Source: Paragordius varius
Taxonomy: Eukaryota > Animalia > Nematomorpha
Assembly: GCA_964247055.1 (NCBI GenBank)
Contig: OZ176060.1
Coordinates: forward strand, 1,798,001 to 1,862,000
Length of the DNA: 64,000 nucleotides
Direction: 5' to 3'
Shown here: piece after piece, positions 21,547-62,859 of the stretch
How the letters are laid out: each line of letters opens with the position of its first letter
Position numbering within the stretch: the first letter of the stretch is position 1
Notes under the pieces: generated by a model
Seen by the model: only the letters and a program-made list of their open reading frames with translations
What the model was told of the DNA's origin: nothing
The model's database searches: none
Position numbers and translations under genes: made by a program

Positions 21547-21734
21547 ACTCCTATTTGTTTAGATTATACTGTTCACCTATCAAAAAATGTAGTTTTTTTC
21601 AAATTTTAGCCAATATATCTATTATAATAAATAATACACATATGAATATTATGAAGATTAACCAATAAAAAAATACATCAAAAATATAAATGCAGTAGAA
21701 TTCTTTGGGCAATTTACTAGCTTTCGATTCGTAA

Positions 21735-22900
21735 AGACAATTTGCTGATAGTTTTATGTTTGGATGGTTTGTAAGGTGATATAAATTCATTGGCTGTATT
21801 TTTGCAGATTGTGTATATAGAATTCCATATATTTTCAATGTTTGGACATTTTTTTGGGTGTTCAAGACTATTAAAACGATTATGTAATGTAAGGCTATAA
21901 TTATTATCGATGGTATTATAGTCGAGTTTATTACGAAGTGTTTTAGGTTTTTTCTTGGGTAATTGGAGTTTGATGCAGAGCTTAGCAACTAAAAGGTTAT
22001 GATCAGTGTAGCAATGAACTTTTATATTTATTCATGCCAATTATAAAATCATTTTGATTACGGTATTTTGGACACGGGAACGCCATGTGTAAAGGCGTCT
22101 TTTGGATTGATTAAAGAATATGTTTGCTATAAAAATTAATGACTTGGACAAAATTCGATGAGTCGATCGCCTCTGTCGTTTTTTGTTCCTAGTCTTGCCT
22201 CCTACAGGGTATGTATCCTCACCAATGATACTGTTGAAATTCACCAAGGAGAAATAGAATATCTTTTTTGGTACTCGCTTTATTGCTGTTTTTAGCTCAT
22301 TGTAAAAGGTTTCGCATTTGTCGTCGCTGTATGAACTGGTTGGAGCGTAGACTTGGAGGATTGTTATGGGCTGAGGTCTAGTTTGGATCCGTATTGATAT
22401 CATACGTTCGTTAATAGGATTATAGATGTCGGATAAATTTGCTAATTTCTCCTTCATTATGATACCTGTCCATTGTATTTGAGAGTGTTGTGTCCGGAAT
22501 AAAATAGTACGTGATTTTCGAATTCTAAGATGCCATTAGAAGAGATATGTGTTTCAGATACACCGAGTATGTCGATGTTGTATTTTATCATTTTGTTTAT
22601 AACAACATCGATTTTGTTGTTATAAGCACCTCTAAGATTCCAGGTGGCAACTTTTATATTCAAATTCCTTGATTAAAATGTTTGAACCATTGGAATAAGC
22701 AAAAATATGATAGTTTAGGTTTGATAGATTATTATAACGAGAATTTATGACGGAGAATATATGATGGATATTGTGAAGAGATGATTTTAATAAATGATTT
22801 AAAAATATACGAATGTATGGAGATGAGTTAAAATTACATTATTTATGGTAAAAAAATATATTGAATAGGGTAGGTCTACCATACCTTTCCCTCTCAATTG
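21735..22900 (-). mobile_element. RTE-clade non-LTR retrotransposon 5' fragment (AP endonuclease), 3'-truncated
   Basis: IKVATWNLRG, IDILGVSET, ITILQVYAPTS, TDHNLLVAK and NRFNSL motifs of RTE APE, with frameshifts. No RT domain; stops abruptly at the 3' flank of copy 2. Confidence 0.85.
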
Positions 22901-23962: not shown

Positions 23963-24755
23963 CCATTTACACTTCAAGAGTGTCCTTGAACAATTCAAGT
24001 GGTCCTTGAACAATTCAAGTTGGTCCTTGAACAGTTCAAGTTGGTCCTTGAACAATTCAAGTTGGTCCTTGAACAGTTCAAGTTGGTCCTTGAACAATTC
24101 AAGTTGGTCCTTGAACAATTCAAGTTGGTCCTTTAACTTTTTTGTTTTGTTTTTAACTTTTATCAATCAAATCGAAAATAATTCGTCTATTTTATTGTTT
24201 TTAACCTATTTTCTATTATTTAACATAAATTTTAAATCGATATCAACTTTTAATCTTTGAAAAACCGTATATCTTTATTAATTTCTTAAAATAAATTTAA
24301 ATATTTATAAGATTTTAACACGAAATGAAAAAATATATAAGTTTTCTGGGTTATTAATTAAAATTTTTCATTAAAAACATTTAAAAGTCAATAATTTTGT
24401 TCAATTGAAAAAAAATAGTTTTAAACAAAAAAGTGGTTTTTCAATAAAAAAATTTATTTTTAAATGAATAATTATATAATAAATAAAGAAAATTAGGTTA
24501 ATAAATAATTAAATAAAAAAATAAATGCAAAAATTATGGTTAAATCAAAATTTATAAATTTTAAGGACCAACTTGAACTGTTCAAGGACCAACTTGAACT
24601 GTTCAAGGACTAACTTGAATTGTTCAAGGACCAACTTGAATTGTTCAAGGACCAACTTGAATTGTTCAAGGACCAATTTGAACTGTTCAAGGACCAACTT
24701 GAATTGTTCAAGGACCAACTTGAATTGTTCAAGGACACTCTTGAACTGTAAATGG
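23963..24755. mobile_element. Foldback MITE (793 bp) with tandem 21-bp subterminal repeats
   Basis: Ends CCATTTACA...TGTAAATGG flanked by TATATA; 7 left and 8 right copies of GGTCCTTGAACA(A/G)TTCAAGTT. Absent at the paralogous site upstream of copy 2 (about 19445). Confidence 0.9.
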
Positions 24756-34521: not shown

Positions 34522-35751
34522 TTATCGGTATATTTCTTTTGAGAAACCGGACATTCTTATTTTTTCGTGAACAGATTTAATGTGCGTTGCAAGATAGCTT
34601 TTTCTAGAAAAATCTGTTTTACAAATCGGACATGGATATCTAATTTGTTCTGCGTTGCAAGATAGCTTTTTCTAGAAAAATCTGTTTTACAAATCGGACA
34701 TGGATATCTAATTTGTTCATGAACAGATTTAATGTGCGTTGCAAGATAGATTTTTCTAGAAAAATCTGTTTTACATATCGGACATTGATATCTAATATGT
34801 TCATGAATTGAATTGATGTGCGTTACAAGTGAGCTTTTTCTAGAAAAATCTGTTTTACAAATCGCACATGGATATTTAATTTGTTCATGAACAGATCTAA
34901 TGTGCGTTGCAAGATAGCCTTTTTGAGAAAATTCAGTTTTACATATCGGACATGGATATCTTATTTGTTTATGAACAGATTTGTGTCTTGAAAGTGAGCT
35001 TTTCTGGGAAAATTTGGTTTTACAAATCGGACATGGATGTTTAACTTGTTCATGAACAGATTCAATGTGCAATGCAAGATTGTATTTTAGTGAAAAACCA
35101 GCCTTACATATCGGGCATTCATATTTAATTTTTTTGTGTACAGATTTGATGTGTGTTGCAAGATAGCTTTTATGAGAAAACATTTTTGAACAAATTTCGC
35201 ACGGATATTTAATGTGCTCATGTACCGAACGAATATGCTTGTTCAAGCTTTTAGTCATATAAATCTTATCACATTGAATACATCGATAATTATGATCAAA
35301 TTTTGTAGAGTTTAATGACTTAATAAGCTTTGCATTATTATTAAAAAGCTTGATAATATTACTATTTATTTTAACATTCGCACACATCGGAGTAATTTGC
35401 ATTACGTTTTCCGATGGTTTTTTAGCGAAAGATCTAAAGGCTCAGTCTGCTCTCCTACCAAATCAATTATCAAGTCGTTTTTGTTGATTTTGGGAATGAT
35501 ATGAATTTTATCATCTAAGCTAATATTTTGTTGCGTATTTTCGCTTTTATGTTCCCTTGAATAACAAAGGTTATGGAAAGAAGCGTTCAGAATTCTCCGT
35601 AAGTCATCATTTGTGAAGTCTTCAGTTTCCAACATATTAGTAAAAGATGCCGGTTTACATGGATCAATATACTTTTCTTGTTGATTTTTGAGTTCTACTT
35701 TATAAAGCTTAGTATCGAGATCACACCAAAGTTTGTAAGTTGAGTCGCCGA
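34522..35751 (-). pseudogene. C2H2 zinc-finger array (9 fingers) with PLDLS motif and two frameshifts
   Basis: Acceptor at 35752, then open frame through EQTEPLDLSLK. An A6 run (35418-35423) lacks one base needed to continue into ORF 34557-35402. Fingers are C-X2-C-X12-H-X4-H with EQIRYP-type linkers (87-bp units). A 16-nt deletion at 34650/34651 removes the His pair of finger 8 and shifts finger 9 out of frame. Confidence 0.8.
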
Positions 35752-52399: not shown

Positions 52400-53820
52400 A
52401 TCCTTATTTCACAACAGGCAACGATATGTATTTGAGAAACGATAAATTAAGATTTGTTAAACAATAGGCATGTTTGCAAGGAACAGCGATCCAGAAAGTG
52501 TTTGATCTCAGACTAAAACAATTAGGAAGCGGTATTTAAGGTGTCTGGAATGAAAGGTGCTAAAAATTAGGTGTATAGAGAAGCATAGCTGAAAGACGCA
52601 ATTATTTTGAAGCGAGGAGTAAAGCTTTAAAAATGTGGAGGTATACCCACCATGCAAAAAAGGACAAATATAAAAGAATTATTAAGAAACTTAGAGAGCG
52701 AGAATAGTCAAAAAAAACTGTATGACATATAAACAGTAGGGATTGTCTAAAAAAAACTATTGCTCGATACCACAGAAAGACCTGGACTTGTCTTCTTTTG
52801 TGACCGTTGTTAAAGAAACGTTAAATTTTTTGTTAAGGAAGTGATTTTGAAGAGATGAAATGTTTCCAGAACCTAGAATTGGTTGTCAAAGAAAATTTAC
52901 GCTAGACTCTTAATCTGCGCATATTGAAAGAACTACCGAGGAGGTCAATGCCGTTTGAAAGAGATGTATAAAGCTGCTGGTTTGAATGATATTAAACTGT
53001 TAGAAATAGAGAAAGGTATTGAATTTTTAACGAATATTTTAATATAGTAGTTACTACAAGTATACCAAACTTATGGAAGGAGAGTTTCACTGTTTCCAAT
53101 TCAAGGTTAAGCACATATAAATGATTATAACCACTACAAAGAAATAAGATTGATGTCGCATACAATGAAGTTATTTGAGAAAATATTTGCGAAGGAATAA
53201 GAAAAATGGTTATTATAGAGGGTAATCAAATTGGTTTTAGGTTCATCATCAATCCGATTTACGCATTAAGTGGGCTAATAAAAAAACAATTGAAAAAGAT
53301 GCATGTTTTTTAATCGACATTAAAAAGGCGTTTGACAGAAAACCACGGAATAATATGGTGAAGTTTAAGACGAAAAAACGTTCCTGAAAGTTACATGAAA
53401 ATACTTAAAAGTATGTACTACTCTCACCACACCAAAGTTAACATAAAAAAGTGTCAGATCTTATCGAAATAAATTGAGGCATCGATCAGGATCAGATATC
53501 ACGTTGCGATTTATAATACCAATGAAAACTTAAAAGAAGAGGCAAATTGCGGCTTGTATTTTCTTTATGACGACCTTATAGAGCTGTCAGACGAGTTGCA
53601 TGAATTGAATGAATTGGTGTAATGAATTGATGTGTTACGATTGTGCTGTCTCAAAATTAATAAAAAGCGGAATTATTGGGAGAAAACGAGAAATGGAATT
53701 AAAAAAAGGTTGGGTATTAATAGATCAGGTAGGAATGCAAATATTTAGGAGCGATATTAGCCGCAGATAATAATTTAACGCATATTATAAATTTAAGAAA
53801 TCGAAATAATTGGGCAATTA
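52400..53820 (+). mobile_element. RTE LINE reverse transcriptase pseudogene
   Basis: Frameshifted motifs WKESFTV, RLMSHTMKLFEKI, NQIGFR, IDIKKAFD and a YDD-like catalytic segment. Confidence 0.75.
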
Positions 53821-54366: not shown

Positions 54367-54842
54367 TATATTTAATCTATAAAGCGCAGTTAATGTTTTT
54401 TATTCACAATCAAATACATTCATTCAAAGACAAGAAAAAATAAAAATATTGGATTTTTTTCTTTTAAGATTTAAAAAAATGTAAAAATTTTAAATGCAAA
54501 TGGAGTGTAAATTTAGCTTGCTTAAAAAATATTGGCAATAATTGTTTAAATTAATCGAAAAATATTTGGGTAAAAATGTTATGTTAAATATAATATTTTT
54601 AAAATACCAATTATAAAGAATGTAACTACAAATTAATTTTAATAATAAATTACGATTTCCTGTTTTAGCAGTGGTTTCCATGAAATACTTTCTCTCAGAA
54701 ATATCGAAAAACTCATTTTTCTTCCGAACTTTTGTTGATATAAATAAAAATGTTTCAATACCGGAACAACATGCCTTTTCCTCACAACTCAAAAAACAAA
54801 AAAATAAACTAAAGTTTGATCATCGCAAAGTTTATATTCCAG

Positions 54843-57554
54843 AACAACGAAATAGCCCAAGAAAGAGTGGTAGCTCTATTGTTGGAACCGCATTAATTGG
54901 GGGTAAAAAATTAATTATTAGGCAATATAATGGGATTAATTGAAATTATATATATAATGTAGGAGCGGCGACAGGTGAATTTTTTTCTATTTTATATTTT
55001 TATAATATTTTATTGATAAAATTATTTACAACAGGTGTGATTGGCGGTATGATATATTTTTATATATATTAGTTTTTTTTAGATGTTTTGTTATGTATCT
55101 AGATTTATATTTTTGTCAATGTCTTTTTGTAAGAAAAAAGAGGATGTCAGCGCAACGCATAAAATATTTTTGAAGTTTATAAAATTTTGCTTATGTTTCA
55201 CTACATTATAAGTCCTAATACTATATTTTGAATAATACAATAACTAAAATAGTTTATAATATATAAGACGTTCAAGGATATTAAACTTTAATCCTCTAAA
55301 ATATTAAAAACCCAATAAAAATTTATGAACTGACCTCATAGTTTCTCTATTAAAGTAACCCTTTTGTCTCTCATTAAAATAAATAGCACCAAATCAAATA
55401 ACATTTCCAAGTTTGATAAAGAGTTAATCCGTCCCACACCTTTAGTTTTAATTTAAGTTCAATAATTCCTATGAAATCATACACGCAAATACAAATATTT
55501 TTTTAAAAGACAACCATATTTTAAATAGAACCTATCATTTTGGACTAAAAAATATGTAAAAAGGTATACCATTTGCACTTTAAGATCCCTAAACACTTTA
55601 AGTTGGGACTTTTTGTTTTGTTTTTTAATTTATATCAAAACGTGTTTTCATTTATTTTATTATTTTGATCCCATTCTCTGATTTATCAACATTTTTAAAT
55701 CACTATTGATCATTAAAAAACTGTATATCACATTAAATATATATTAATGAGATTTCAACATAATTGATACAAGGTTATTATTTATAATTTTTTTTGAAAA
55801 TTTATACTTGAATAATATTATAGAAATGAAATAAAATGGATAGAAACAAAAATTGTTTTTTAATTAAAAAATTAATTTTAAATTAATAAATATAATATGA
55901 TAATTAAAGAAAATTAGGTTAAAAAATAATAAAATAAAAAATACTTTTAAAATTATGGTTAAATCTTAATTAAAAATTTAAGGACATGTTCATGGACCAA
56001 CTTGAAGTGTTACAGATCCAACTTGAAGTGTATGGTATATACTTAAGAGTTTTAAACCAGGTATGAAAAGTGTGGGTATCCTTTAGAAAAAACTATTCGT
56101 TTCAAATTCATTTATTTTTACTGTAAATATTTTGCCAAAATAATTTAGCTGTTGTTGGGGGTGGAGCCTCGGAAACACCCGAAGTGGCAGCTGTCGTACA
56201 AGGAGTCAATGATATGGAGTTGGGTGAAAATGTAGCACAAAATCTCGCAAACAACGAAAACCCAACTGATGAAGAAAACAACATTGAAGAACGACAAGAA
56301 AATCCAGAAAGAAACTCAAGATCATCTGAACATCAAACTAATCAACCTTCTCAGTCGACTTCAAATTCCAGTAGTTACATATTAAACTTAAATAAAATTG
56401 AAATATACGGACATACCGTAAAAAGGCAATTATTTTTTTTCAAAAATATATATAATTGATTGTAAAAACGCTATATTTAAATTTTAAGCAAGATAAGTAT
56501 TTTGAATTTTTTTTAAAAGAAAAGAGTTATCTTTTGAAAAAAATAGTTGTCTTTTTTATCTGCGTTTTGTCCGTAAAATTTCATTTACTGTATATTTAGT
56601 TTATATTTTCTTTCCAGATTATGAGATTTTATTATTGGTTGCATATCTATCAATAATATTGTTATTTAATTAAGGAAATTCACCAGAGGAGAATGCTAGA
56701 TTAGACACAGAAGATATCGGTAATTTTAAAAAAAATGCTATACGAATGAAAATACTGTAAAACATAAAATTATAATGACAAAATGTAAAAATAAAAAAAA
56801 TATTTTTGTCGTAAAGACACCCATATTTTTTTAACCTTAACTTTTCTCATATAAACTTTAGTTTTATATGTAAAATATAGAATTGATTAGTCTTCTCACT
56901 TTGTCATTTAATAAATGAGTTTTATTGAATAAATCATGTGAAAAAAGTATGGTTGTCTTTTAAAACATATTTGTCTTTATACGTTTTGTCCGTATAATAT
57001 AATTATTACTATAAAAAAAATAATAACCTTGCATTATATAGCTGATAGACCTGAACACACATCAGAAGAAATCGAAAATGGTAAAAATATAAATCGAAAT
57101 TAATATAATTCTCAATTAAATTTTAGTTATACAATTTTTATAACAAAATAGCCCGAGAAATCGTGGATCGATACGGTAGAACAAAACAAATTAAATTAAA
57201 GTTTATCATTTGAATTAATATATTTTTATATCAATTTGTATAATGATAGGAATGTATCATTTAAAAGCAGGTTGTAATTTTTATAAATAATATTCAAATA
57301 CTATAAGATACTATGATAATTTCTTATATGTTTAGCTCTGTACAATATAGAAACTGGTAAATCAACTGAATACACAATTCAATTCATTTATTCTAAACTT
57401 CATATACACTTAGGGGCAGAGAATGTGATGTATGAAGCCGAAAATATAGTTACAAGTTAATTTTTATAAATTACTAATAATTTATCTTGAAATCAAAATT
57501 ATACAGGCTAATCGCCTAAAACAAATAATTGGGCTCGCAAAATATGGAATATAG
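54843..57554 (+). CDS. Micro-exon gene A: Gly-zipper hydrophobic segment, acidic linker, amphipathic C-terminal helix
   Basis: Exons 54843-54902 (60), 54963-54974 (12), 55035-55046 (12), 56149-56370 (222), 56675-56719 (45), 57042-57080 (39), 57152-57175 (24), 57250-57270 (21), 57336-57356 (21), 57414-57448 (35), 57507-57554 (48). All GT-AG; the first nine are symmetric phase 1. Reads QRNSPRKSGSSIVGTALIGGAATGVIGAVVGGGASETPEV...EEIENAREIVDRYGMYHLKAALYNIETGAENVMYEAENIANRLKQIIGLAKYGI*. Start exon not identified; some donors are weak. Confidence 0.75.
55569..56035. mobile_element. Shorter relative of the 23963 foldback MITE, inside an intron of micro-exon gene A
   Basis: TA|CCATTTGCACTT...AAGTGTATGG|TA ends; GGACCAACTTGAAGTGTT units; interior matches 24470-24560 (AAAGAAAATTAGGTTAA...AAATTATGGTTAAATC). 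Confidence 0.75.
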
Positions 57555-58271
57555 ATGTATATTGGTGAAAGATAACTATCATCGTTTAAAAAAATACCAT
57601 ATTTTTAAAATTCTTTTAATTTTACGTTTGATATGTTTATTCTAATGTATAATTGAAGACACCAGGTTTCTTGGAAGAGGTATGGAAAATATTTATACAT
57701 AAATAAGGTATAATATTTGCGGAAATATTTAACAGATTTAATTTTATTAAATATTTTCATAACATAATTATTTTTTAAAGCACAAATCTAATCGCTAAGC
57801 CATGTAAAACTCATATTATTTAAAAGACATATATCTGACCAATTTTTAGAGTGTGTTTTCTGCTAAAATTTATTTGATAACAATAATGAAAAAAAGAGTT
57901 TATTATATTTTATAGTAAAATTATGAAAATTGCACAGATATATTATTCATATGTTAAAAGTCAATGAAGGATAAAAATACATTTTAAAGTAACATTTTTT
58001 TAAATAATAGGCGCTTTCGGCTAAAACCTATAATTAACATTATATGTAAATTGGTAGTGATCATTATAAAATCAAAAAAGGCTATTTTTCGAAATGGCAA
58101 CATACATCAATATTTAGAGAAATTATAGGTTTACTAGAAAAACAATAATGATTCAAATCACGGTGTCCACACAATTCTCGAGCCGCATACTAAACTAAAT
58201 TAATTTTGAGAATACATATACAACAGATGTATCTCTCTTTGATTTATAAGTACATAGGGGTCTCTTATTAA

Positions 58272-58836
58272 CACTTGGATACAACAGACTCATTTTAGTC
58301 CTTCGATTCAAATTGGGGTAGTTGAATACCCCAGGCCTGTGTTAAATTAAATACTTTAAAAAATATGGAAATCGAAACCATGGCAAAATTTTGCACTTAT
58401 ATAACATTAATAAACCGAAATATATAAAAAATTTTATTCATAAATACTTGATATTATTCATTTTGAGCTAAAACTGAAAGGTAAAAATTTAGTCAACGTG
58501 ACATGTGTGCGAAGGTAAAATTAAAAAATAATACAAAATAAATTCCATTTTTATCAATGTTAGATGTAATTTATATAAAAAATAAGCTTTAGTTTTACCT
58601 TTAAATTTAAATAAGGACGATTTTTGCAAAATTTTTGTAAAAAAATGGCGTCGAAGTAGTTTGAGGTGGAACTTTTTTTCAAAACAAAATTTTATCACGA
58701 TATTTTGGCATATTTTTAATATTTATCAGGATAGAAGCATAAATTTAAATTGGGACCGATTCCTTTAGTAGTTTTTTAAAAAATTTAATTTAAATTTAGT
58801 CTGGGGTATTTAGATACCCCAATTTAAAACATAGTG
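58272..58836. mobile_element. TTAA-flanked (piggyBac-like) MITE, 565 bp
   Basis: TTAA|CACT...AGTG|TTAA with subterminal inverted GGGGTA..TACCCCAG motifs; partial copies at 36254 and 28060. Confidence 0.75.
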
Positions 58837-59000
58837 TTAATGCCACTCGTGCTCTAAGTGGCGAAAATGGCGTTCGGTATCTTATCATATATGTTTTTGA
58901 AATTACGAACTGATTAATTATAGAATTTTCTCATATATCTCTTGTGTTAAATCAATATTTTAATTTTAAATTTGCTAATTGTTTAAATTATATTTTTTAG

Positions 59001-62000
59001 TTTTACGCATGTCTGGGCTTAGACTTGAAACCCATTTGCATGGTAAGGAATAAAGTTTAAATTTATACAGCTTTAAGTGAATCAAGTATGCATGTATTGA
59101 TAATCAATATAATTAGATTTCATACAAAGTAAATATATTTATGAATACAAATATTATAAAGGGGCGTAACAAGAAGAAGTTTTTTAAATCACCCATATTT
59201 TTTACCTGATTTTTTAAATATATTTACAATTCAAATTCCCCCTTAAACAATTCAAATTACCCCTTAAACAATTCAAATTCACCCTCAAATAAATATATGT
59301 TTTTAGATAAAAAAATACCGAATATTTTTATATATTTTTAAAAAATAAAAATTTTGTTTTTAATTTAAATAATACTGAAAAATAATAAAACATGCCATAA
59401 AAATATATTTCTCATTAATATTAGTTCAAAAACTCATAATATATTTTTAGGGTGAATTTGGTAGTTCCATCATCACCCCAAATATTTTTGAGATTGGACT
59501 ATAAATGTAATTTTTAAGAATTTTTTAAATATTTAAAAATTTTATTTTATACGTTTTAAAAATAAAAATGGCTACCTAAAATCCAAATTAGGGTGAATTT
59601 GAATTTTCGAGAGGGATTTTAAATTGTTCAGGGGTAAATTTGAATTGTTTAAGGCAAATAAATGCAATTGAGTTTGTTACCATTTAATACTTTGTTTTTT
59701 TTGGATTCAAAAACGAGTTATATAAAATAAGGTATATAATATGGTTGTCTTAAAAATATTTCCCATATTTATGTTTTGTCTATTATATTTATTTTTACCT
59801 TTTTTATTAAAAATATTTGCATGGCAGTTTTAAGGGACCAAATAACAAGTAGAATTTATAATAAATTAAAAAATTCGGATAATATCTTGAAAATCATTTT
59901 TGCATACTTTATATTATAAAATTATTGATAGAAATTATATCAGAGAATGTTTATCTACTTATATTAAAATTATCCAATTTTTGGCGGAAACATAGGAAAT
60001 TTTTACCAGTCTGAAATTGCTGATTTCAAAAATTATGGAAATAGTGATGTAAACAAGTTTTGTGGTATAAAAAGCGGAAAATTATAATATTGCCATGGGA
60101 AAATGAAGTACAATATAATGCGTTTTAAAGAGGAGATCAGTAATTATAGGGAGACTTATAAAGAAAATAAGTACGCTAGGGCGTCTTAAACTAGTTAATT
60201 TAATAAGACTGAAAATGCTACAAATAATGACGGGATATAGTGATTGAAATTATCCAGAAAAAAGCTAGTTTAAGCATAATTATAAAACATTGATATTCAT
60301 TATAAAACCCCTTTGGCTAGAAAATGAAAAGAGATATAATTATAAAAGTTAATAATATATTTGTGTTATTATATAGTTTTCTTAAAAAAAAGGGTTTTCC
60401 AAAGCATCTACAAATCTTTAATTTAAATATTACGAAATCTGGAAAAGAAAAGTAGTTAGATAACTAAAGTTGATAGATCTTCTACAAAGTTTATTCGTTG
60501 TTTTGTAAAAAAAATGAGATTATAGGAAGATTTTCTATAGTAATCATTGTATAACAGGCATTCACCAAAGTAAAATAGAGATTTTATAATCTTTATTGTT
60601 TTATATTAAATGTATGATATTTTTAGGTAGATATATGAAGTTAAATACCTATAATGCTGAACTTATTCTTTTATATTTTTTATTTAAACGAAAAACATCT
60701 GGCTTAAAATGTTGCCTAATATGTTATTTATCATTAGGGTAATTGCTTTTCGGTATAGAAGACAGAATTGTAAAATGATTTTTAATTAATTGGAATCCCC
60801 GATGGTATATTAATAAACGATAAATCATAAAATAAAGTGTGTTGGTAAAACACATAACCAAAACTATATTTCATGTTAACGTTCAGCGTGTGTTAATCAT
60901 AAACCTGATCGATTACAAACAAGACATTAACTTTCAAGGGACGAGAAAGGCTGTTGAATACCGAGGGATTAACTCGGAAAATATTAGAGAAGATAAAACC
61001 ATAATATAGTAATATCAAATGTTTAAAAAGGAAGAGGAGTTAATTTAATTTAAAAAAAAATTTTTGTTATGCCGAGCGCTGAATTTTGGGACCTTGATTT
61101 ACACATCGATATTTTTAATAATTATTTTTTTAATTAGATTTACGTCAACTTCTGGAAGGTAATTAATATGTAGTTTAATATAAAATATTACAACAGGCGT
61201 TGAAGACGGTTTTCAAGGTATTTTCGCAATATAGTTAAATTAATTAAAATAAAATAAAACACATTTGCAATAACGTTTAATTTATCATAATTTGAGTTTT
61301 TTATATTAGCTCTTGAACAACGATTTACTGGTATGTTTTTTTGGACAAAGCGAAATGGAAAAAACTGAATTTTTAAGCTTTATTATATATATTATTCTAG
61401 AGAGTACATCCGCCACACTAGGTTAAAATTAATTTTTATATTTTAGCTAACGATCTAAATATAGTGGGTAAGATATATAATTGTATTTTCACATGGCAGA
61501 AATATCTGAAGACATTAATGGTATAATTTAAATTCTTTCCACATAATTAATATTTATATTGATGTTATTTTTTATAATAGACGCAATAAACGCTGAAGAA
61601 TGTAAGGAAATTATTGAAATTTATTTTATACTAATTTTTTAAACACTTTCATTACATTAATGTCCATATTCGGCTAAACAACTCTGCTGGGTGTGCTCCT
61701 TTTTGAGTCATATTTTCGTTTTGATAAAAGAGTGCGAATCTCTTTTTACGACAAAACTAACAATCTATCTCTATTGTATCGATTTAACATCCGTTTTATA
61801 ACTATCCTTTACTTTCTTTTTCGTATAACCTTTTTTTGTAAAAATGACACCGATTAAATGCTTATGTCCATGAATTATTTTATGTCTCATTAAATATAAA
61901 TAATTTTATTGCATTGTTAAATTCAACCAAATATATTTAATATCTCTATTTACATCGGTTTGATGATTGCAGATTTTTACTTTAAAAAATCTTCTGACTT

Positions 62001-62366
62001 TCATGTACTGATAAAATATAATATTCATTTATTTATTGACCTATGCATAACCTTCCAGTTTGATAACCCATTTGTTAAAATTGGTACTTAAGCCAGTGTT
62101 ATAATGAAATTCCTACCAACCTTTGATCAGTTTCTGTATTAACTAACGCTTCTTTCATTAATAAAAAAATAGTTCGTATCTTAGTATAGTTCAATTGATT
62201 AATGATTAATTTAAAATGATTTTCTTAATGTAGAGATGTTAAATTAAGTATTTTTTATGGCTGGTAAGTTATCTTGCCAAAAACAATATTAACAGAAACT
62301 AAATTTTATGACTCAAATTTATACAATTATATTATACATATATATTTGAAGACATGGATGCTATTG
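59001..62366 (+). CDS. Micro-exon gene B (extent provisional)
   Basis: Symmetric phase-1 exons 59001-59042 (42), 59071-59085 (15), 59828-59848 (21), possibly 60558-60569 (12), the 7x21-nt block 61138-61601, and 62352-62366 (15). Regions 59932-60260 and 61973-62263 are unresolved. Possible terminal exon near 62600 (DEDNKEV*). Confidence 0.55.
59226..59660. mobile_element. Foldback MITE of the 21-bp-repeat family inside gene B
   Basis: Left tandem CCCTTAAACAATTCAAATT(A/C)CC units; right inverted GGGTGAATTTGAATT units. Confidence 0.7.
61138..61601 (+). CDS. Block of seven consecutive 21-nt phase-1 micro-exons (heptad exons)
   Basis: 61138-61158, 61197-61217, 61310-61330, 61401-61421, 61447-61467, 61500-61520, 61581-61601. 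Each is AG|21 nt|GT and open in phase 1; joined: DLRQLLE-GVEDGFQ-ALEQRFT-ESTSATL-ANDLNIV-EISEDIN-DAINAEE (the first residue depends on the upstream exon). Confidence 0.85.
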
Positions 62367-62859
62367 GTAATTTTAAATCAACATAATGACATCTTTCGCA
62401 ACGATTTTAAATTAAGAATATAAGTTTTTGCTTTTCAATCGGTTTATTTCGAATATACCATCATATTTTATTTTTTTCGAAAATGATTTTGTATACACGT
62501 TTTTAACTGAAATTTTTTTTGTTAACTAATTAAAAATAGAATTTAATTTTGCTTTCTAAATTCTTCCAAATTAAGGTATTTCATTGAATTTTCATATTAG
62601 ATGAAGACAATAAAGAAGTATGACCTGGTAAAGACGATGAAGAAAACAACATTAAATTTTTACATTTATAGATATATGGTGTATATAGATTATATAAAAT
62701 GGTGTCAATAAATAAATAAAAATATTCCTTACTAGTGCCTTAAAAAATTGATACAAAAAAAATCGTTTATAGTCCATTATTTTGGTACGACTTGAGTTGT
62801 ATTGGAAAGCTCTATCTACATTATAAATTTGGGTTTGAACTCGAATACACTAAATATGT

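Follow-up and report, generated by a model that had tools for sequence, protein, structure and literature searches.

Seven consecutive 21-nt candidate micro-exons in a putative orphan gene of the hairworm Paragordius varius

The closest described counterparts of the locus reported here are the micro-exon genes (MEGs) of schistosomes, whose symmetric exons measure 6–81 bp, mostly 15 bp, and are separated by introns of 100–5000 bp (PMC10526429). Their products are small secreted proteins, several of which contain amphipathic helices, and exon skipping generates variants of them (PMC10526429, PMC5825161, PMC10399815). A signal peptide is present in all those examined (PMC5825161), and repeated exon-length patterns have arisen from internal duplication (PMC10526429, PMC5825161). 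Here we describe a 64,000-nucleotide (nt) stretch of the hairworm Paragordius varius (Nematomorpha; assembly GCA_964247055.1, contig OZ176060.1, positions 1,798,001 to 1,862,000), referred to below as the window, in which positions 61138–61601 of the + strand carry seven consecutive units of exactly 21 nt, each bordered by AG on its 5′ side and GT on its 3′ side. These units, E1 to E7, are very probably real micro-exons, and we call the gene to which they would belong gene B.

Gene B resembles the MEGs, especially MEG-12, MEG-26 and MEG-24/27, in that most of its coding sequence would lie in symmetric micro-exons of the same phase, and in that it would encode a small, lineage-specific product with an amphipathic helix as one part; annotation readily overlooks genes of this kind. 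For this reason the earlier note on this DNA went too far in proposing an undescribed system, since micro-exon gene architecture is known from schistosomes (PMC10526429, PMC5825161). What sets gene B apart from the MEG class is its uniform 21-nt exon length together with its near-minimal introns: MEG exon lengths are mixed and mostly 15 bp, whereas gene B has seven consecutive exons of exactly 21 nt, and its internal introns are 25–92 nt, only the outer ones being long, compared with 100–5000 bp in MEGs. In addition, MEGs have a signal peptide whereas none was found in the gene B model, no sequence similarity between MEG families and the gene B product was found in Pfam or in a cluster search, and exon skipping is documented for MEGs whereas gene B is known from genomic sequence alone.

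Functional and evolutionary analogies to gene B may also be drawn from troponin T and collagen. Vertebrate fast skeletal troponin T has consecutive frame-neutral 5′ mini-exons with split codons and an acidic segment, which are freely combined to give many isoforms. The likeness lies in the run of frame-neutral mini-exons with split codons and in the acidic segment, but the troponin T mini-exons are of unequal length, lie between long introns and account for just a short variable tail on a protein that is otherwise large and conserved, whereas the seven units would make up two thirds of the coding sequence of gene B. The 54-bp exons of fibrillar collagen are equal in size and are thought to descend from a duplicated primordial exon unit; there, as in gene B, each exon spans an integral number of the protein's structural repeats. 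Collagen, however, combines a 3-residue repeat with 54-bp exons in phase 0 and an obvious sequence repeat, whereas gene B combines 7 residues with 21-nt exons in phase 1 and no detectable repeat. Among the papers searched, none connected micro-exons with Nematomorpha, and none tied heptads to exons of 21 bp.

Seven units in one open frame

The seven units were read directly from the window sequence, and AG and GT borders are present at the ends of all of them (Table 1), in agreement with the earlier claim of seven 21-nt exons in 464 bp. The acceptors are preceded by AT- or T-rich tracts, and start-to-start spacings of the units are irregular (59, 113, 91, 46, 53 and 81). When the 147 nt of E1–E7 are concatenated, frame offset 2, corresponding to phase 1, is the only one of the three that is open, with 3 and 7 stops in the other two, so the common open phase that had been proposed is confirmed. 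Translation of this frame gives LRQLLEGVEDGFQALEQRFTESTSATLANDLNIVEISEDINDAINAEE, a peptide of 48 residues. Retention of any intron of the modelled gene would result in a stop or a frameshift.

Table 1. Features of gene B as modelled and of the neighbouring gene A (window coordinates)
Feature	Position	Strand	Length (nt)	Acceptor	Donor	Remarks
Gene A	54680-57512	+				micro-exon gene; all exons phase 1; directly upstream of gene B
E0, putative first coding exon	59001-59042	+	42		GTAAGG	ATG at 59009; MSGLRLETHLH + split codon
Putative intron 0	59043-61137	+	2095			if retained, stop after 3 codons
Micro-exon E1	61138-61158	+	21	TTAG	GTAATT	(D)LRQLLE
Intron 1	61159-61196	+	38			GTAATT...ACAG; if retained, stop after 2 codons
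Micro-exon E2	61197-61217	+	21	ACAG	GTATTT	(G)VEDGFQ; GC 0.48
Intron 2	61218-61309	+	92			GC 0.16
Micro-exon E3	61310-61330	+	21	TTAG	GTATGT	(A)LEQRFT
Intron 3	61331-61400	+	70			
Micro-exon E4	61401-61421	+	21	CTAG	GTTAAA	(E)STSATL, polar; GC 0.52
Intron 4	61422-61446	+	25			GTTAAAATTAATTTTTATATTTTAG; TTAAT branch-like motif 14 nt from 3′ end
Micro-exon E5	61447-61467	+	21	TTAG	GTAAGA	(A)NDLNIV
Intron 5	61468-61499	+	32			
Micro-exon E6	61500-61520	+	21	GCAG	GTATAA	(E)ISEDIN; GC 0.24, lowest of seven
Intron 6	61521-61580	+	60			if retained, stop after 3 codons
Micro-exon E7	61581-61601	+	21	ATAG	GTAAGG	(D)AINAEE; sole unit with final T instead of G
E8, putative micro-exon	62352-62366	+	15	tttgaag	GTAATT	(Y)MDAI
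E9, putative terminal exon, coding part	62601-62623	+				(D)EDNKEV; stop TGA 62621-62623

The run of units is not random. Chains were defined as non-overlapping AG-N21-GT units separated by gaps of 20–120 nt and sharing one common open frame, and were compared with those in 1000 blockwise dinucleotide shuffles, made over the entire window and searched on both strands. The observed chain has 7 units, whereas the shuffles gave mostly 3 and never more than 6 (reached twice), with none of the 1000 arriving at 7; the earlier view that chance occurrence is very unlikely is therefore borne out. By itself, the simple count of AG-N21-GT matches per 464 nt has no discriminating power, because overlapping matches cluster in the shuffles as well. 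Composition is likewise coding-like. In a window of 26.4% GC and animal-like content, the exons have a GC content of 0.39 versus 0.16 for introns and flanks, a contrast larger than that at the 209 background AG-N21-GT matches of the window (Mann-Whitney p=1.2e-4). A codon-usage log-odds measure, for which the long coding pieces of the window itself served as training set, scores the open frame at +9.1 bits and the other frames at -15 and -20, and its value for the seven units exceeds that for sets of seven drawn at random from open background units (p=0.015). GC content at the three codon positions (GC1/GC2/GC3) of the seven exons is 0.62/0.28/0.25, the first positions being G-rich.

We rejected a tandem repeat or minisatellite as the source of the pattern, given that Tandem Repeats Finder found no repeat at 61138–61601, that the spacing is irregular, and that pairwise exon identity equals the expectation from codon-position composition (p=0.23). 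The units are thus dissimilar and not tandemly repeated, as had been stated. No near copies of E1–E7 were found elsewhere in the window, and depth in the DNA runs is that of a single-copy locus.

Scans for micro-exons are prone to false positives in this window. Permissive chaining, which accepts any exon with a length of 3n and introns of up to 600 nt, yields chains of 10–80 "exons" throughout and is useless as evidence. An intact-looking C2H2 zinc-finger gene at 34557–35635 on the - strand has seven or more fingers in 84-nt tandem units, and its antisense mimics six 18-nt (34598–34999) and five 39-nt "symmetric exons", a trap for any such scan. Irregularly spaced, dissimilar units and short introns are what let the seven-unit locus pass these controls.

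The seven-unit chain, the GC contrast, the single open frame, the codon log-odds and the canonical GT..AG borders together make this a non-chance pattern, and single-copy depth, the absence of a tandem repeat, a heptad bias and the phase-1 design of gene A, which includes two 21-nt exons, lend further support to micro-exons. The best explanation is that an unannotated orphan gene, specific to its lineage, lies on the + strand and that the seven units are genuine micro-exons of it, symmetric and in phase 1; we give this explanation a probability of about 0.6.

The modelled gene and its upstream neighbor

The outer exons, E0, E8 and E9, are tentatively assigned to the seven-exon gene. Among phase-1 candidate start exons, E0 has the highest GC content (0.43–0.44) and the best splice-like flanks, and an acceptor-like tttttag ends 8 nt 5′ of its ATG; within 57500–61137, no convincing exon was found that combines an ATG, a hydrophobic stretch and a donor in phase 1. 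An AATAAA motif lies 3′ of the putative E9 (62707–62712), and a possible alternative donor, GTATGA, lies within it at 62618. With outer introns of 2095, 750 and 234 nt, the modelled coding sequence is 219 nt, of which 147 nt are in the seven 21-nt phase-1 exons, a share that becomes 74% when the 15-nt exon is included. The predicted product of 72 residues consists of MSGLRLETHLHD, followed by the 48 residues of E1–E7 and then YMDAIDEDNKEV, and has an isoelectric point of 4.05, with 19 D/E versus 4 K/R. No signal peptide is apparent, the modelled N-terminus having no hydrophobic core, as judged with no dedicated predictor run. We consider this full 72-residue model moderately likely.

Directly upstream lies gene A, whose exons measure approximately 223, 12, 12, 225, 45, 39, 24, 21, 21 and 42 nt and are followed by a terminal exon that opens with a stop-completing GC|TAA, placing the in-frame stop at about 57509. 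Its product has a Gly/Ala-rich hydrophobic segment (SSIVGTALIGGAATGVIGAVVGGGAS) and then an acidic tail. Given that the exons of gene A are of mixed size (12, 24, 39, 42 and 45 nt), a length of 21 nt is not demanded by the splicing machinery, and uniform 21-nt exons are therefore a property of gene B or its family. The uniformity argues for an origin by duplication of a single exon-intron unit, for a structural period of 7 residues, or for both. A strong acceptor-like site, composed of a T-run and AG, is located just 5′ of the ATG in both genes, 8 nt away in gene B (58999–59011) and 11 nt away in gene A (54667–54682), which suggests 5′ untranslated region (UTR) introns or spliced-leader trans-splicing.

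According to the mechanism that we propose, gene B would lie in tandem behind gene A, and its seven micro-exons would be constitutively spliceable. The AT-rich GT..AG introns of 25–92 nt would be removed by intron definition, joining the 42-nt start exon, the seven exons, the 15-nt exon and the short terminal exon into a message for a very acidic 72-residue peptide. The identical 21-nt length would best be explained in two stages, an old serial duplication of one exon-plus-intron unit, whose copies have since diverged beyond recognition, and then selection for a helix of 7-residue period, which would have kept codons from being lost or gained.

It is possible, if rather unlikely, that the exons belong to a larger transcript, either as an alternative 3′ module of gene A or together with further exons that might encode, for instance, a signal or membrane segment; the ends of the 72-residue product would then be wrong. 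The strong acceptor 5′ of E0 would fit such an arrangement, the reading frame of E0 has no stop ahead of its ATG (LR-M...), and the penultimate exon of gene A could join 57659–57679 and then E0 in frame. Moreover, the hydrophobic segment and acidic tail of gene A are a design that gene B by itself lacks. However, the frame of gene A closes with an in-frame stop of its own where its last exon begins, high-copy repeats stand between the two genes, and the position of the gene B ATG only 8 nt past the acceptor may reflect a 5′-UTR intron or trans-splicing.

The repeats in question, at 58146–58909 and 59101–59673, are of very high copy number, with a summed contig word depth of ~1e6 compared with ~3e2 in the flanks (DNA runs, organisms A, B and C). 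They contain internal inverted motifs as well as 21-nt tandem motifs (ACAATTCAAATTCCCCCTTAA x3 at 59226–59289), are similar to miniature inverted-repeat transposable elements or foldback elements, and the second of them inflates putative intron 0. Elsewhere in the window, two 21-nt satellite arrays of 7.5 and 8.3 copies with 95% matches are found at 23982–24137 and 24563–24736. The two are mutually reverse-complementary and ~425 nt apart, giving a foldback structure, and their core, AACAATTCAA, resembles the repeat at 59226. Fragments of a retroelement of the long interspersed nuclear element type occupy 21599–22663 on the - strand, where an endonuclease-like open reading frame begins MNIKVATWNLRG, and 52400–53750 on the + strand looks like another decayed retroelement.

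Variants, transcripts and homology

Sequence variation at the locus comes from contigs of other runs. Run X11, from another individual with the same species label, carries a haplotype that differs by ~10% and by many small indels at 61097–61220, and a ~10% divergent haplotype with many small indels again at 62249–62540. For single-copy DNA, the diversity around both intervals is unusually high, and the sample behind the assembly is itself heterozygous at 61154. Contigs of organism B are identical to the window, and organism C contributes only a few 151-nt pieces. Within E1, the divergent haplotype has three changes, two synonymous (61142 A>G and 61154 G>A) and one that replaces Arg with His (61144 G>A). 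Intron 1 has a 2-nt deletion variant at 61183, and intron 5 has insertion variants (+TTT, +A and +TTATC) at 61485–61491 in another haplotype. Indels in introns and two of three E1 changes being synonymous form a pattern that is compatible with coding, though not a significant one.

Several observations weigh against an orphan micro-exon gene at this locus. Three RNA-labelled contig runs with the same species label gave no real match on 57000–62700, the runs being small and lacking a positive control, and the predicted terminal exon and UTR, which at more than 100 nt would be alignable, were also uncovered in them. Among the splice sites, E4 has the weakest of the seven donors (GTTAAA) and E8 a weak acceptor, and exon similarity (p=0.23) gives duplication no support. 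All ten indels among the displayed variants between haplotypes fall in introns, a zero count in exons that is not significant (p about 0.3), and E1, with 3 variants in 21 nt, is as variable as the introns, so constraint at the nucleotide level is not demonstrated. For the modelled product, Pfam returned no family at E<=1, and a protein search of 5.8 billion clusters within a 40–126 residue length window gave no match at E<=10.

The reach of these searches is limited in ways that bear on their reading. Indexing by 31-mers cannot detect an mRNA built of 21-nt exons, and RNA contigs are not alignable across 21-nt pieces. Four further runs (X3, X9, X10 and X11) contained no spliced form at the locus; X3, X9 and X11 cover it like genomic DNA, and X10 has 13 short poor matches only. 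As a control for homology, a 74-residue exon of the neighbor gene was compared with 1.84 billion representatives, which returned one weak match with 32% identity and none that was near-identical. The homology blank therefore means little, because the control exon is also without a near-identical entry, the organism seemingly being absent from the libraries. Rfam gave no match in the window.

With neither an RNA match nor a homologue found, it could be argued that AG and GT dinucleotides simply happen to fall in this way in AT-rich DNA, or that the locus is a dead, unexpressed copy from a micro-exon gene family. The long "genes" that permissive 3n chaining yields everywhere in the window, the false chain of six 18-nt "exons" antisense to the zinc-finger repeats and the variability of E1 are all in keeping with this. 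It is nevertheless opposed by four partly independent statistics (the chain, the GC contrast, the heptad bias and codon usage), by a frame that stays intact over 72 codons when a random frame here closes about every 12–17 codons, and by splice dinucleotides that are all intact; irregular spacing and dissimilar units speak against a repeat artefact. We therefore consider chance or decay quite unlikely.

Heptads, exon skipping and wider significance

With seven codons to an exon, a period of 7 residues will keep step with the exons in any case. Exon positions 2 and 6 are favored by hydrophobic residues, which occupy 9 of the 14 places there (p=0.03, within-exon shuffling). The heptad pattern is clean only in E1–E3 and E6, E4 being polar and E5 and E7 out of register, and E2 contributes two Gly (EGVEDGF) inside the contiguous heptads. 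The hydrophobic moment is 0.55 and is high only across residues ~10–30, and periodicity power at 3.5–3.6 is only modestly above that at period 3–4. From these features, the product would probably have an N-terminal amphipathic helix of ~3 heptads and a weaker second helical stretch. A canonical coiled coil, with at least four or five contiguous heptads, hydrophobic a/d positions and few helix breakers, was rejected on the ~3 contiguous heptads, the two Gly, the polar E4 and the register of E5 and E7, with no dedicated predictor run.

The earlier note had seen a clean 4-3 pattern in the first three exons, one heptad per exon, and a helical rod whose length and surface could be tuned by splicing. 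The first of these stands as to the ~3 heptads and the bias at positions 2 and 6, but two Gly lie inside; the second is favored by that same bias (p=0.03), but not by the polar E4 or by E5 and E7. The rod is not borne out for a modelled product of only 72 residues with ~3 contiguous heptads, and a coiled-coil rod tuned by splicing is largely unsupported and in our judgment very unlikely. That skipping any exon preserves the frame was correct, but the removal of E4 or E5 is not simply the loss of one heptad.

Frame neutrality itself is readily accounted for. Including or skipping E1–E7 and E8 in all 256 combinations gives products that differ from one another, each in frame and free of stops. 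Since E0–E6 all end in G, only the downstream exon decides which residue (D, G, A or E) stands at a junction. The frame is kept because the exons are phase-1 symmetric and end in the splice-consensus G, which is a generic property, with a logic also found in collagen and in schistosome micro-exon genes, and no sign that skipping occurs. Introns as short as 25–92 nt imply splicing by intron definition, under which exon skipping is generally uncommon and constitutive inclusion is favored. Combinatorial use of the 21-nt exons as cassettes, giving many peptides that differ by whole heptads and so tuning helix length and surface, would draw on the 256 distinct products, on modules made interchangeable by their final G and on the variants that schistosome micro-exon genes produce by skipping (PMC10399815, PMC10526429), but its frame neutrality is automatic, the intron sizes favor constitutive inclusion and the heptad register is uneven, all of which make it improbable.

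As a single locus on which no RNA match was found, gene B as an orphan micro-exon gene is a good candidate rather than a discovery. If transcripts confirm it, micro-exon genes would not be confined to flatworms, and helical peptides would be made from uniform 21-nt exons with introns near the minimum, which would challenge ideas on how small exons are recognized. A bolder proposal, that gene B is one of a genome-wide, non-flatworm family with amphipathic helices encoded at a heptad per 21-nt exon, near-minimal introns and regulated skipping that yields a graded series of peptides differing by whole heptads, is a long shot; if true, the micro-exon-gene strategy would have arisen twice independently, here with exon length serving as a structural ruler. 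One hairworm genome report, for Gordionus montsenyensis, lists 10,320 genes, 71.6% BUSCO and 26.93% GC (10.1101/2023.06.26.546503). Genes of the type proposed here are missed by standard gene finders and RNA aligners, as no 31-mer of the mRNA occurs in the genome, and gene counts and claims of missing genes for such genomes could be biased.

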